IMG/VR virus record: IMGVR_UViG_3300037294_000266
Span: 62,001 to 126,000 of that record
Strand: one strand, 5' to 3'
Length of the DNA stretch: 64,000 bases
This document shows positions 3,431 through 59,223 of this stretch, one piece after another. Below the pieces are notes generated by a model. It was not told the DNA's origin. It saw only the letters and a list, made by a program, of their open reading frames with translations, and made no database searches. Numbering within the stretch: position 1 is the stretch's first letter; every line of letters begins with the position of its first letter. A program made the translations under genes and the position numbers.

Positions 3431-4612
3431 TTAGGCTTTGGTCACTACGTACGTTTTCATAATCCGACCGCCTTCATCACGATTAACAACCACCTCAGGG
3501 ATCCATACACGCTCACCACTGGCCAATGTTCTCCAGTGTGCAATACGGGTGTGTTCACGAGGCGCGGCGTGTGTATCGCCCTGCCACGGCGTCTTACCTG
3601 CCTTTGGTTTACCGATCACATAACGGACTATGTTGAAACCGTCAGCCAATGCCGCTGGCGGCACAGGTATCGATTCATTACCAGGACCACGATATTGATT
3701 AGTTGTCTCAACCCCTTCACTTTCAAGTGCCTTTATAAGTCCAACCAAAGTCAGTACGTTGGCTCGTATTTGCTCTCTAGAGATGGACTGGTCATCGACC
3801 TTCGATGTGATGTCGAGTGGTTCACCTTCGTGTTTAATGATAAGTCCGGTACCAATGACGTTAACGTCATCGACAGCATCAACGGTAGCAAACTCAATGA
3901 AGACTTCATGATCATTGAGTTTGCTAACCACCATCACCTGCGGCGTTTTATCATCGCCCATCTTTAACATGAACTTAACGTACGGTAGTTTGAGGTCTAT
4001 TGGATCGTTCTCAATAGATAACTCGTGGGTAAATAACTCAGGATCCATGATGAAGATCGTTGGAATTGCTGCTACCTGGTCAGCGAGAGTTTGTTCTTTT
4101 ACAGGCGGAGCTCCATTGACCAGATAGTCTACAATGGATCGCATCGCTCCTCGATACAGATCGTCTTGATCAGACCAGCCGTCGATAGTGGCAATGTAGG
4201 GTTCTGGAATAGAGGGGAACTCAGAACGAACTCCGGTACCGGCGATACGAATTTTCCCGCTGTCTTTCTCAAGGAACTGGAACATCACAGCGCCGCAGGT
4301 ATGTAGTCGCACTACAACCTCTTTCACAATACCGCCGATGTTTACTTTGAAGACAGTAACTTCGGTAAGGTTCACTCGCCCCTTAGGAACAGATTCTTCT
4401 AGGTCTTCACGAGCTGTGAAACTAATGTTCTTGAGACCGTTGAGTGTTTTACGCAAGACTCCGATCTTATCTTTGAGAATCAGACGAGCTTTACGCCGAT
4501 CCCATTTCATGAGAATGGCGTCGTTCTGCTGTTGCCGGCGACTGAATGCTTCTTCACGACTAAGACTAGCGCCGGTGTTAAGATGTACCCGTTCGTGTAA
4601 TTGAATTTCCAC
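3431..4612 (-). CDS. Hypothetical phage protein, 393 aa
   Basis: Start revised to GTG 4612 behind GGAGG (4617-4621). C-terminal PREHTRIAHWRTLASGERVWIP motif recurs in uncharacterised phage proteins. Confidence 0.75.
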   Translation of the reverse strand: MEIQLHERVHLNTGASLSREEAFSRRQQQNDAILMKWDRRKARLILKDKIGVLRKTLNGLKNISFTAREDLEESVPKGRVNLTEVTVFKVNIGGIVKEVVVRLHTCGAVMFQFLEKDSGKIRIAGTGVRSEFPSIPEPYIATIDGWSDQDDLYRGAMRSIVDYLVNGAPPVKEQTLADQVAAIPTIFIMDPELFTHELSIENDPIDLKLPYVKFMLKMGDDKTPQVMVVSKLNDHEVFIEFATVDAVDDVNVIGTGLIIKHEGEPLDITSKVDDQSISREQIRANVLTLVGLIKALESEGVETTNQYRGPGNESIPVPPAALADGFNIVRYVIGKPKAGKTPWQGDTHAAPREHTRIAHWRTLASGERVWIPEVVVNRDEGGRIMKTYVVTKA

Positions 4613-54797: not shown

Positions 54798-54885
54798 TGG
54801 CGGAAGCGGTGAGATTCGAACTCACGGACCCCGAAGAGTCGACAGTTTTCAAGACTGTAGGATTCAACCGCTCTCCCACGCTTCC
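54798..54885 (-). tRNA. trnS: tRNA-Ser(UGA)
   Basis: Complete type II cloverleaf GGAAGCG...ACAGTCT-TGA-AAACTGT...long variable arm...GTTCGAATC...CGCTTCC-G-CCA. Confidence 0.97.
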
Positions 54886-54965: not shown

Positions 54966-55039
54966 AGTAGATAGACAGGACTTTAACCTGCGACCTCCTG
55001 TCTCGTTTACCGGGACACTACCAGCTGAGCTATAACGGC
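54966..55039 (-). ncRNA. Degenerate tRNA-like element with non-matching acceptor strands
   Basis: TAGCTCAGCTGGTAG D-region, T-arm GCAGG-TTAAAGT-CCTGT. Its 3' strand CTATCTAC pairs with the next element rather than its own 5' end. Confidence 0.55.
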
Positions 55040-55044
55040 GAAAT

Positions 55045-55133
55045 AGGCGGAGAGCCACCTTAGACTTCCTGATGTGCCCGACGGGAGAGCACGGAAGTAA
55101 CGGGTTAGATTAGCACCCTCCAAGGGGCTCTCC
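55045..55133 (-). ncRNA. Y-shaped RNA with long acceptor-like stem and G-CCT tail
   Basis: GGAGAGCC/GGCTCTCC plus CCTTGG/CTAAGG, hairpins GGGT/ACCC and ACTTCC-GTGC/GCAC-GGAAGT. Confidence 0.55.
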
Positions 55134-55137
55134 TGTT

Positions 55138-55258
55138 TGGTCCAAGTATCCGGGTTCGAACCGGTGGAGTATAACATCCGATCGACGTGCGACCATAGTC
55201 GCGTTCGTCATCAGACATCACTCCCAGAGCCACCTCCCAAACCCGATCATAATCTTGG
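55138..55258 (-). ncRNA. 121-nt tRNA-like RNA with long irregular stem replacing the anticodon arm
   Basis: Acceptor CCAAG/CTTGG with A-CCA end, T-arm CCGG-TTCGAAC-CCGG, about 24-bp interrupted stem capped by GCGAC-TATG-GTCGC. Confidence 0.7.
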
Positions 55259-57397: not shown

Positions 57398-57491
57398 GAT
57401 ACCCCCTACAGGATTCGAACCCATGCTCGCGCAGTATCCGAATGCGAATTTGGACACTACCCAGCTCTAACCAACTGAGACTTAAAGAGGC
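57397..57491 (-). ncRNA. tRNA-like RNA with 7-bp anticodon stem and 12-nt loop
   Basis: Acceptor GCCTCTT/AGGGGGT, CTCAGTTGGTTAGAG D-arm, AGTGTCC/GGATACT, T-loop TTCGAAT, A-TCA end. Confidence 0.65.
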
Positions 57492-57504
57492 TTAACAGAA
57501 ATCG

Positions 57505-57825
57505 TGGGTTGATGACCTGAAGCGGTCTTAGATGTTTTCACATCACCCGTCAACCTACTGGGCTTGCCGTTACCATTTCGCCCGAATGGTCAAGGGGATC
57601 TGTCATACGCTTCTAGATCTTGGGCAGGGCGGTGACTAAACAGTTCTATTGTTCAGACACATCCTTCTCGGGGTGCGGCTTTGGACTTCCCTGATCGCAC
57701 GTCTCCAATAGACTAGAGGATGCGGTCGTAGGGTTTCAGATAAGAGATCAGACTGTGCAGTCCGGTGCCTAGGTGAGTAGGGCACTGTCTTGATCAATCA
57801 TTCCCCAGCTGGTTGAGGGGGAATT
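57505..57825 (-). ncRNA. Run of structured non-coding elements
   Basis: GGTTGA/TCAACC junction with GATGT-GAAA-ACATC and GACC/GGTC, plus ACCATT/AATGGT, GTGCC/GGCAC, GACTG/CAGTC and ATTCCCC/GGGGAAT. No ORF of 60 aa or more in the track. Confidence 0.5.
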
Positions 57826-57828
57826 AAA

Positions 57829-57910
57829 CACCTCTAGCGAGTCTCGAAGTCGCACACCGTCGATTAGAATGGCTACCAATCGACTGTCCTACCAATTGGA
57901 CGATAGAGGT
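57829..57910 (-). ncRNA. tRNA-like RNA with 7-bp anticodon stem and 12-nt loop
   Basis: Perfect acceptor ACCTCTA/TAGAGGT, D-arm GTCC-AATTGGTA-GGAC, GTCGATT/AATCGAC, T-loop TTCGAGA. No encoded CCA. Confidence 0.75.
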
Positions 57911-57924
57911 ATAAACGCTGTATG

Positions 57925-58050
57925 TAAGTATGATGGGATTCAAACCCACGTACGCTTTGGTATAGCCAATGGACTGGCACCTCGGCGTTCTAGTCCAACC
58001 GTCCGCGTTACCGGACATTTCACCCTTAAGCCAGGCTCAGGAACATACTC
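57925..58050 (-). ncRNA. 126-nt tRNA-like RNA with three hairpins between the D- and T-arms
   Basis: Acceptor GAGTATG/CATACTT, D-stem CCT/AGG, hairpins GTCC/GGAC, GGACT/AGTCC and TTGG/CCAA, T-arm GTGGG-TTTGAAT-CCCAT. Confidence 0.7.
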
Positions 58051-58060
58051 ACACACAAAC

Positions 58061-58157: not shown

Positions 58158-58270
58158 TCGAGAACGCGGGCCGGCGCCGCGTATGGCTGCCTCATTGGGC
58201 TGCCGATCATAGTGCGCGCTGCCACTAGGGCTGCCGCTGATCCGGTGCGGAGACGAACCCGCGTTCTCGA
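58158..58270. ncRNA. Multibranch hairpin with 13-bp closing stem and four GGCAGC motifs
   Basis: TCGAGAACGCGGG/CCCGCGTTCTCGA. GCTGCC on the + strand at 58186, 58199, 58218 and 58230. Confidence 0.65.
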
Positions 58271-58321
58271 ACTCTTACACGATTGTTAATCGTGATTAAA
58301 ATGGCGATTTGGCGTAATTAT

Positions 58322-58858
58322 TTAAGCTGTCGTATAGCGTTTACCGGAGTGTATGTTCTCTACAACACCCCTACTAATTCCAAACATTCTGGCTATTTCA
58401 CGCTGAGAATGTTTACCCTTTAATGAGAGAACTCTATTCGCCTCTTCTTGAGTAAGAACAGCATTATGACTATCGGCTCCGCGACGTTGTTTCAATAAAC
58501 CATTTTCTTTTGCATGGTCCATATTACCTTGCCGAGTAGTCCACTCTAATTGAGTGTAACCATTTTTGGCTTTATCGCAGAAAACATGATTGACTTCAAG
58601 ATCATCACTTTCTCTTCCAACAAAGGCTTTGGCAACCTGTACATGGATTTTTATACAGATGTTCTTACCCTTCCTACCACCTATTTTACTAGCATGGGTC
58701 AGGTAGCCATTATGATTCAATGTCTGAGACAGTATTTTACCTGTCCTGCGACTTCTCAAGGTGCCTTTCGAACCAATATCAAAGTGTTCTGGATAATCCG
58801 GACACGGAACAAATATTTCATCTTCGTCGTCAAGTGTCCAGCCAACTAATTTACTCAT
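58322..58858 (-). CDS. Free-standing NUMOD4-HNH homing endonuclease with C-terminal HTH
   Basis: IGSKGTLRS, IHVQVAKAF, EVNHVFCDKAKN...LEWTTRQGNMDHA, SQREIARMFGISRG. Start at 58858 with GGAGG. Confidence 0.85.
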   Translation of the reverse strand: MSKLVGWTLDDEDEIFVPCPDYPEHFDIGSKGTLRSRRTGKILSQTLNHNGYLTHASKIGGRKGKNICIKIHVQVAKAFVGRESDDLEVNHVFCDKAKNGYTQLEWTTRQGNMDHAKENGLLKQRRGADSHNAVLTQEEANRVLSLKGKHSQREIARMFGISRGVVENIHSGKRYTTA

Positions 58859-58865
58859 GTTGACC

Positions 58866-58889
58866 TCCATCTGTTTATTGTCAGATGGA
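58866..58889 (-). promoter_or_regulatory. Hairpin occluding the HNH ribosome-binding site
   Basis: TCCATCTG-ACAATAAA-CAGATGGA overlaps GGAGG, with TACATTA immediately upstream. Confidence 0.6.
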
Positions 58890-58912
58890 TAATGTATGAT
58901 CTAAAGAAAAGG

Positions 58913-58949
58913 AACAGCCAGCTACTCTACCTGTCTGAGCTATCATGGA
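58913..58949 (-). pseudogene. 5' half of tRNA-Asn(GUU), truncated right after the anticodon
   Basis: TCCATGA-TA-GCTC-AGACAGGTA-GAGT-A-GCTGG-CT-GTT, then unrelated HNH leader sequence. No matching 3' half (CCAGC...TCATGGA) found. Confidence 0.75.
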
Positions 58950-58957
58950 ATTAAATT

Positions 58958-59203
58958 GTGTAGCGCTGAGGACTTTCACCTCTCCTTTTCATGTCAGAGT
59001 TTAGTCGGACACGGAACACAACGCCACCTATGTTCAGAGTAATCGCCTGTCAGGACGGAATCCACCTTCATGGTGCGCGATGCGCACCATTGCTGACAGA
59101 CTATTGCTACAACGGAACGGAGACCAGTCCTATTCAGAACCGATAAGACAGCCGTGAAGAAGTCTCGTCCGTTCTGCCTTTGCAGCAAATTCTTCTAGGC
59201 ATA
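58958..59203 (-). ncRNA. Long-hairpin structured element(s) plus decayed tRNA-like tail
   Basis: TTGCTGCA/TGTAGCAA-closed hairpin, GTCTGTCAG/CTGACAGGC enclosing ATGGTGCGC/GCGCACCAT, T-like GAGG-TGAAAGT-CCTC. TATG at 59200-59203. Confidence 0.5.
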
Positions 59204-59223
59204 CAATACAGAGAATCAGTTAT

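Follow-up and report, generated by a model that had tools for sequence, protein, structure and literature searches.

The window analysed here is a stretch of 64,000 nucleotides, corresponding to bases 62001-126000 of a 266,646-bp virus record. The DNA polymerase of the phage shows 81% identity to that of Pseudomonas phage pPa_SNUABM_DT01 (DT01) and about 41% to those of the PA7-type jumbo phages, and the phage is therefore a phiKZ-like jumbo phage. The minus strand is the strand of its genes and of every feature discussed below. Within its tRNA cluster, the 5' part of a tRNA-Asn gene is followed by a cassette containing an HNH endonuclease gene, a promoter-like region and a hairpin, and then by the last bases of the same tRNA. 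The components of the locus are listed in Table 1.

Table 1. Features of the interrupted tRNA-Asn locus, in the direction of transcription.
Feature	Position in window	Strand	Basis
tRNA-Asn 5' fragment, nt 1-37 through the anticodon GUU; dead remnant	58913-58949	-	Read directly; match to sibling
Whole inserted cassette, 607 nt, missing from the HNH-less allele	58306-58912	-	Contigs of runs X2, X4 and X5; alignment with L023 and L025
Putative T-rich upstream promoter element, CCTTTTCTTT	58903-58912	-	Kept at the 5' edge of the cassettes of L010, L019 and L020
TACATTAT box, -10-like element of a putative phage-type promoter	58889-58896	-	Recurrence in the genome; homologous cassettes
Hairpin CCATCTG-ACAATAAA-CAGATGG, overlapping the Shine-Dalgarno sequence	58867-58888	-	RNAfold
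Shine-Dalgarno sequence GGAGG, 5 nt ahead of the start codon	58864-58868	-	Read directly; kept in homologous cassettes
Putative HNH homing endonuclease gene; the 178-aa product contains NUMOD4, HNH and C-terminal helix-turn-helix regions	58322-58858	-	Profile and structure matches
3' cassette tail, 16 nt, with the first CGCCA (58314-58310)	58306-58321	-	Missing from the HNH-less allele
GCCA, discriminator G73 plus CCA; sole surviving 3' piece of tRNA-Asn	58302-58305	-	Intact sibling allele

The tRNA-Asn fragment, read from 58949 to 58913, is composed of a 7-nt acceptor strand, U8, a canonical D arm (stem GCTC/GAGT, loop AG..GGTA), the 5' strand of the anticodon stem and C-U-G-U-U. Neither ARAGORN nor Rfam calls it as a tRNA; with 100% identity, however, it matches nt 1-37 of the tRNA-Asn that ARAGORN calls in two sibling contigs, L023 and L025, described below. 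Base 58912 opens the T-rich tract, and the complementary strand of the anticodon stem is absent after it. At the other end of the cassette the motif CGCCA occurs in two copies, the first of which belongs to the cassette itself, and the last four bases of the second (58306-58302) form the tRNA end. An earlier note, made from the letters of this DNA, had described a tRNA-Asn half that ends at the anticodon GUU with an HNH cassette next to it, and a CGCCA remnant near 58302; both descriptions are borne out by the minus-strand reading and by the intact sibling allele, in which GCCA is the discriminator followed by CCA.

The endonuclease gene begins at the ATG at 58858 and not at 58870, yielding a protein of 178 residues, as in P0001 and all homologues, and its stop codon occupies 58324-58322. 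It is present as a single copy in the genome. Its membership in the HNH/NUMOD family follows from a Pfam NUMOD4 match (E = 1.2e-7, 32.3 bits against a cut-off of 23.4), from PHROG 59, 'HNH endonuclease' (E = 4.7e-29), and from its best match among solved structures, I-HmuI (1U3E; E = 2.7e-6, residues 25-178); the Pfam HNH_3 match is weak (15.9 bits, below the cut-off of 24.8). Ten residues are invariant in 10 homologues of 35-68% identity (N94, H95, K100, N103, L108, E109, W110, T112, N116 and H119), and in the alignment with I-HmuI, H95 corresponds to the catalytic His and N116 to the metal-binding Asn. The motif NH...N...LEW...N..H, regarded in the earlier note as slightly divergent, is invariant in the homologues and is a trait of the family rather than a sign of decay. 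The dN values range from 0.24 to 0.53 and synonymous sites are saturated, so that only a dN far below dS can be stated. With the motif invariant across the family and dN far below dS, the ORF, which is under purifying selection, looks functional.

The state of the locus before and after the arrival of the cassette can be compared directly. A search of public sequencing runs revealed, besides the probable source sample, one sediment sample from a different study in which 42% of the words of the stretch occur. Its phage is 94-99% identical to the window, as judged from a comparison of its contigs with the latter, and the contigs of runs X2, X4 and X5 skip the cassette (58306-58912, 607 nt) and have 36 other letters instead. 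The sibling contigs L023 and L025, which were retrieved via a flanking 52-aa protein, carry a normal tRNA-Asn(gtt) at the syntenic place according to ARAGORN (L023:5434-5510 and L025:3819-3895). A three-way alignment of the window with L023 and L025 shows that the first 37 nt of tRNA-Asn are identical; the 36 nt that follow (L023:5471-5506) complete a canonical tRNA-Asn, starting with AA of the anticodon loop and the 3' side of the anticodon stem, continuing with the variable loop and a canonical T arm, and ending with the acceptor's 3' strand. In both sibling contigs the intact acceptor stem is followed by GCCATTTTAATCACG, which is identical to the window from 58305 downward, and the comparison of the contigs with the window also ends the junction at 58305. 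In the only tRNA-Asn gene of the phage, the 607-nt cassette thus stands where nt 37-72 would otherwise be. The comparison with relatives possessing an intact tRNA-Asn, which the earlier note had suggested, therefore reveals a presence/absence polymorphism (607 versus 36 nt) at a single locus between otherwise near-identical genomes. Since the 36 nt sit at the place of the cassette and GCCA follows them directly, the 3' exon was deleted and not displaced. A separate candidate, the sequence GCCATTTTAA as the leftover of a former tRNA-Ser site, was rejected, for the intact allele shows it to be tRNA-Asn's own end and trailer.

The flanks of the insertion are identical between the window and its HNH-less siblings for about 155 nt on each side, and the flanks thus bear no co-conversion tract that would mark a homing event. 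No microhomology is seen at the junctions in the three-way alignment. Both observations would argue against recent homing from a diverged donor.

The HNH allele itself is represented by two assemblies, which possibly derive from one sample, and the contigs give no allele frequencies. As the record is derived from a metagenome, and the identical contig from Logan (L017, run X1) may share its source sample, the junction could in principle be an assembly chimera of a phage whose real tRNA-Asn is intact. We consider this highly improbable: two assemblers agree over 6,179 identical bases that span both junctions, unrelated samples show the same succession of a tRNA 5' fragment, a T-rich/TACATTA promoter and an HNH gene, and the genome offers no second site that could have supplied the 36 nt or the HNH gene to a false join. 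In a separate observation outside the window, the two ends of the record (G000:C1, approximately 1-230 and 266420-266646) have one sequence in common, with a TACATTAT box inside it (at 55 and 266472). This is either a repeat at the termini or, for a circularly permuted genome, an overlap left by assembly.

The position of the break, in the anticodon loop just after U, is the classic site of group I introns in bacterial tRNA genes, the HNH ORF is of a type associated with introns (I-HmuI), and a strongly structured region lies downstream of the ORF. These features would suit a tRNA-Asn intron (group I, or a split or permuted tRNA) whose 3' half lies elsewhere and is spliced in cis or in trans to the 5' half, one of the outcomes that, according to the earlier note, would refute its reading. 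The evidence leaves this explanation with almost no probability. Rfam gives no match to a group I ribozyme over 1.9 kb, either at the gathering threshold or even at E = 10, and the intron mode of ARAGORN finds nothing at the locus. In the 6 kb scanned downstream there is no acceptor-pairing strand preceded by a T arm, and a scan of the whole 266,646-bp genome found no T-arm-like hairpin with a complementary acceptor strand. When the intact sibling tRNA was compared with the genome by blastn-short, only nt 1-37 were found, the 3' half giving chance matches of up to 13 nt. The intact allele, moreover, places the 36 nt exactly at the cassette site, with GCCA directly after. The GC-rich structured RNA that follows the ORF was examined as a possible intron core and rejected, as it is found in phages around an intact tRNA-Asn, upstream of the gene in DT01 and downstream of it in the HNH-less siblings; the structured region is thus present in phages that have no HNH gene. 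Since the genome lacks a 3' half and a group I ribozyme was not found, splicing is excluded, and the tRNA-Asn gene has been destroyed rather than split. The HNH ORF is not fused to any host ORF and has no self-splicing intron or intein around it, i.e., it is free-standing.

The 5' edge of the cassette consists of CCTTTTCTTT and, further downstream, the TACATTAT box. The box occurs 19 times in the genome, all copies being on the minus (coding) strand, compared to about 5 (4.8) expected per strand; about 11 of the 19 copies lie 26-97 nt upstream of an ORF start with a Shine-Dalgarno sequence, and most of the copies are preceded, about 10-25 nt upstream, by a T-rich tract. This consensus was derived here from the phage itself and not from the literature. 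A corresponding motif, TA[CT]ATTA[CT], is found at the same place in all eight homologous cassettes. The early promoters of phiKZ contain an extended -10 box with a T-rich motif upstream of -19 (PMC8244752), and their motif is centred near -10 (PMC7598289). The same architecture, an AT-rich, -10-like box with an upstream T-rich tract, repeated on the coding strand, is found in the present phage. Given this recurrence and the published phiKZ architecture, CCTTTTCTTT and TACATTAT most likely form a promoter of the phage's own type. The TACATTA motif to which the earlier note had drawn attention is accordingly part of the recurrent box of the phage.

Between the box and the start codon, RNAfold predicts a hairpin with a 7-bp stem (-9.8 kcal/mol, z = -4.3 compared to shuffled sequences), the 3' arm of which covers two of the five Shine-Dalgarno bases, namely the first two G residues of GGAGG. 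The box ends one base before the 5' arm of this hairpin, and a motif centre near -10 would put +1 at about 58882, the last base of the arm. Among the homologous cassettes, that of L019 has an identical 7-bp stem. In L014 and L015, helices are formed from unrelated sequences at the same place, beside the Shine-Dalgarno sequence, that of L015 being weak, and weaker or alternative pairings occupy the position in L010, L020, L018 and L021. The previously proposed hairpin at the ribosome-binding site is thus present, with comparable pairings in homologous cassettes of different sequence.

Just upstream of the tRNA region, the sequence ATTGTATG (59200-59215, minus strand) contains a TATG motif, such as has been reported for the late promoters of phiKZ; in L025 its distance to the tRNA-Asn downstream is only about 40 nt. 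This sequence is a candidate source of transcripts that read through into the HNH cassette.

Relatives of the HNH protein were found by a word search, in metagenome assemblies only. No relatives were obtained by blastn of the locus against the phage collection, by tblastn with both flanking proteins or by IMG/VR scans in which the HNH protein and the two flanking proteins served as queries. The homologues, which are 52-68% identical to the protein of the window, are located in the tRNA clusters of other phages, and in five of the eight contexts the gene is beside or inside tRNA-Asn. The nearest relative is only 68% identical, so that no relative found qualifies as the donor, a point against the homing interpretation given below. 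In L010-L013 the order is tRNA-Tyr, cassette, 114 nt and an intact tRNA-Asn, and in L020 a structured leader RNA, the cassette, 10 nt and an intact tRNA-Asn. In L015 and L016, tRNA-Asp is followed by an HNH gene, the stop codon of which falls within a tRNA-Asn that is intact, and L014 has a tRNA-Asn 5' fragment of about 30 nt, the cassette and a second, unusual tRNA-Asn. Other tRNA genes are involved in the remaining contexts: L021 and L022 contain a tRNA-Ser 5' fragment that ends in the anticodon loop, the cassette and the last 8-9 nt of tRNA-Ser, and in L019 a tRNA-Thr-like gene cut in its T loop precedes the cassette. Two homologues have independently replaced the segment of a tRNA that extends from the anticodon loop to the acceptor. 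The Logan contigs L018 and L019 represent one relative with two HNH cassettes of this family in tandem, about 540 nt apart, and between them are a homologue of window 55042-55147 and a truncated tRNA-Thr-like gene.

The DNA homology between the window and the other cassettes begins at 58913-58917, at the junction, and ends at the stop codon. It is therefore the promoter and the ORF that constitute the mobile unit, and this unit lives in tRNA clusters, most often at tRNA-Asn.

The distribution of the homologues bears on the identity of the target. The cassette may be mobile, or once mobile, and have landed in tRNA-Asn illegitimately, its enzyme having a target elsewhere (a neighbouring intergenic site, or generic tRNA-gene motifs) or having been domesticated, as a nickase for replication or packaging or for the exclusion of competitors. 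Homologues are also found at tRNA-Ser and tRNA-Thr, as well as in the interval from tRNA-Tyr to tRNA-Asn, three of them coexist with an intact adjacent tRNA-Asn, and the junctions in the window are devoid of microhomology, all of which would fit such a history; so would relaxed cutting at many tRNA genes, given the deletions and patchy conversion in the phage's other tRNA genes, and T4 SegB, too, cuts many tRNA genes weakly (PMC2330249). Set against this are the occurrence of tRNA-Asn in five of the eight distinct contexts and the loss from the carrier genome of exactly the 3' half of tRNA-Asn. In addition, the intact tRNA-Asn beside the HNH gene in L010 and L020 has an unusual 52:62 pair in its T arm (TGTTCGAATCA and AGTTCGAACCT, respectively), as opposed to the canonical GGTTCGA(A/G)TCC of the HNH-less alleles (L023, L025 and DT01). 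This difference would fit immunity of the target site; the sequences are few, and it is a lead only. On balance, we judge a target other than tRNA-Asn, or a domesticated enzyme, to be rather unlikely.

The surroundings of the locus exhibit several further peculiarities. Three tRNA-like genes with enlarged anticodon loops are located in the window (57829-57910, about 57925-58044 and about 57400-57493, all on the minus strand) and another in L010 (4731-4838). They have normal acceptor, D and T arms and an anticodon loop of 12-16 nt in the window and 39 nt in L010. ARAGORN misses them; the first scores 41.5 bits with the Rfam tRNA model and the second is weakly tRNA-Sec-like, at 19 bits. These genes may be decayed, may carry short insertions that can be removed, or may be tRNA mimics that do not decode. 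The region with the two adjacent ones (window 57821-58060) is occupied by unrelated sequence in the HNH-less siblings, 243 nt in L023 and about 140 nt in L025, and L025 is also without a structured stretch of 214 nt upstream of tRNA-Asn (window 58972-59185). The tRNA cluster is a mosaic made up of swapped cassettes.

A structured RNA in which four GGCAGCC-like boxes lie within a helix of 13-14 bp is found at window 58158-58271 (minus strand) and at L002:13233-13345, as well as in L010 (about 3735-3835) and upstream of the L020 HNH gene. The sequence of the helix differs between the phages and its pairing is kept; the element always adjoins the first tRNAs of the cluster, and in the window a complementary GGCTGYC box lies near it (58075-58058). 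No Rfam family matches this element, and a pattern scan returned two chance matches in coding sequence and one unrelated pair of contigs.

Other tRNA genes of the phage have been altered as well. Compared to L023:8774-8995, the window has a 205-nt deletion at 55023-55039 (minus strand) by which tRNA-Thr(tgt) and the tRNA-like gene that comes next are fused at their D arms. The tRNA-Thr(tgt) gene, intact in the sibling, has therefore also been lost, via recombination between conserved D-arm sequences. The tRNA-Ser(tga) gene (window 54798-54885, minus strand) differs in patches from that of the sibling, in the D arm, anticodon stem, variable arm and T stem, within identical surrounding DNA, and this looks like gene conversion from another tRNA-Ser allele.

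Taken as a whole, the element is probably a free-standing HNH homing endonuclease cassette, not borne by an intron, in the tRNA cluster of a phiKZ-like jumbo phage, which would cut the tRNA-Asn gene of related phages and be regulated by its hairpin; we hold this interpretation with good confidence. Among homing endonucleases of phage tRNA clusters it is a clean example, and an ordinary one. During co-infection, we infer, the enzyme would nick or cut the intact tRNA-Asn gene of HNH-less relatives, the cut site likely being inside the 36 bp that are missing from the carrier genome, perhaps in the T-arm DNA as for SegB. Recombinational repair would then copy the cassette into the cut genome, and the carrier would be immune because the 36 bp of target are gone. 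Transcripts that read through from upstream would fold the hairpin and hide the ribosome-binding site; those begun about 7 nt past TACATTAT would be without its 5' arm and, with the Shine-Dalgarno sequence free, could be translated. The phage would now depend on the tRNA-Asn of its host. One point against this interpretation is that in three relatives the tRNA-Asn next to the HNH gene is intact; these alleles would have to be resistant, or else the target would not be simply any tRNA-Asn gene. Against its regulatory part, the hairpin of the window and that of L019 are strong, but those of L015, L020 and L021 are weak.

A broader and more speculative proposal, which we consider doubtful, is that this HNH clade overwrites, time after time and in different tRNA genes, the part that runs from the anticodon loop up to the 3' acceptor strand (of tRNA-Asn here, the anticodon arm of tRNA-Asn in L014, and tRNA-Ser in L021 and L022) and thereby drives the erosion of tRNA arrays. 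If true, the geometry of recognition or repair would be tied to the architecture of tRNA genes, e.g., through cuts at two conserved positions of the tDNA or through recognition of structure. In that case, the enzyme would actively promote the erosion and shuffling that tRNA arrays show in this lineage of nucleus-forming jumbo phages, examples being the fusion of tRNA-Thr, the exchanged tRNA-like cassettes and the patches in tRNA-Ser.

At this locus, a homing endonuclease of a phiKZ-like jumbo phage can be seen as a natural before/after pair, with junctions exact to the base, which makes the target, the mechanism of immunity and the control by promoter and hairpin directly testable. The locus also shows that such elements can cost a phage a tRNA gene, and a consensus for the promoters of this phage was defined as a by-product.

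Comparable genes are known from other phages. An unannotated, full-length homologue of the HNH protein (32% identity over 99% of its length) is encoded in Raoultella phage Ro1 (MG250486, 83551-84096, equivalent to L009:1501-2046). Like the gene of the window it is located in a tRNA array, between tRNA-Gly and tRNA-Glu; unlike the latter, it is a distant relative whose neighbouring tRNAs are intact, save for a small overlap with the annotated end of tRNA-Gly. Phage T5, which is of a type unrelated to the phage of the window, reportedly has endonuclease ORFs embedded in its tRNA cluster. I-HmuI of Bacillus phage SPO1 (1U3E) has the same order of an N-terminal DNA-binding region, an HNH motif and a C-terminal helix-turn-helix. 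Its gene, however, is inside a group I intron of the DNA polymerase gene, whereas that of the window has no intron; the Asp that precedes the catalytic His in I-HmuI is Asn (N94) across the window family, and the Asn of 'NLRW' is variable (xLEW).

Internal promoters combined with hairpins that sequester the ribosome-binding site are described for I-TevI, I-TevII, I-TevIII and segB of T4 and for mobE of Aeh1 (PMC2988022). The mobE genes of Aeh1 and T4 are, like that of the window, free-standing HNH genes that disrupt or border a host gene and have such a hairpin (PMC2790892, PMC2988022). They reside in ribonucleotide reductase genes, which are functional as split genes, whereas the tRNA of the window is destroyed.

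The closest worked-out case is T4 SegB, a GIY-YIG enzyme that is free-standing in the T4 tRNA cluster and preferentially cuts the gene for tRNA-Asn in phages that lack segB; it recognises the conserved T-arm motif GGTTCRANTCC, with weak cutting of many further tRNA genes (PMC2330249). As in the window, the gene is free-standing in a phage tRNA cluster and missing from close relatives, and its promoter and RBS-hiding hairpin (PMC2988022) form an arrangement that resembles the one proposed for the cassette of the window. The two differ in nuclease family, GIY-YIG as opposed to HNH, and in lineage, T-even as opposed to phiKZ-like. In addition, segB lies between tRNA genes, with the gain or loss of neighbouring tRNA genes, whereas the cassette of the window overwrote half of tRNA-Asn itself. 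The theme represented by SegB, an endonuclease of the tRNA cluster with a tRNA-Asn target, would thus extend to another nuclease family and another phage lineage.
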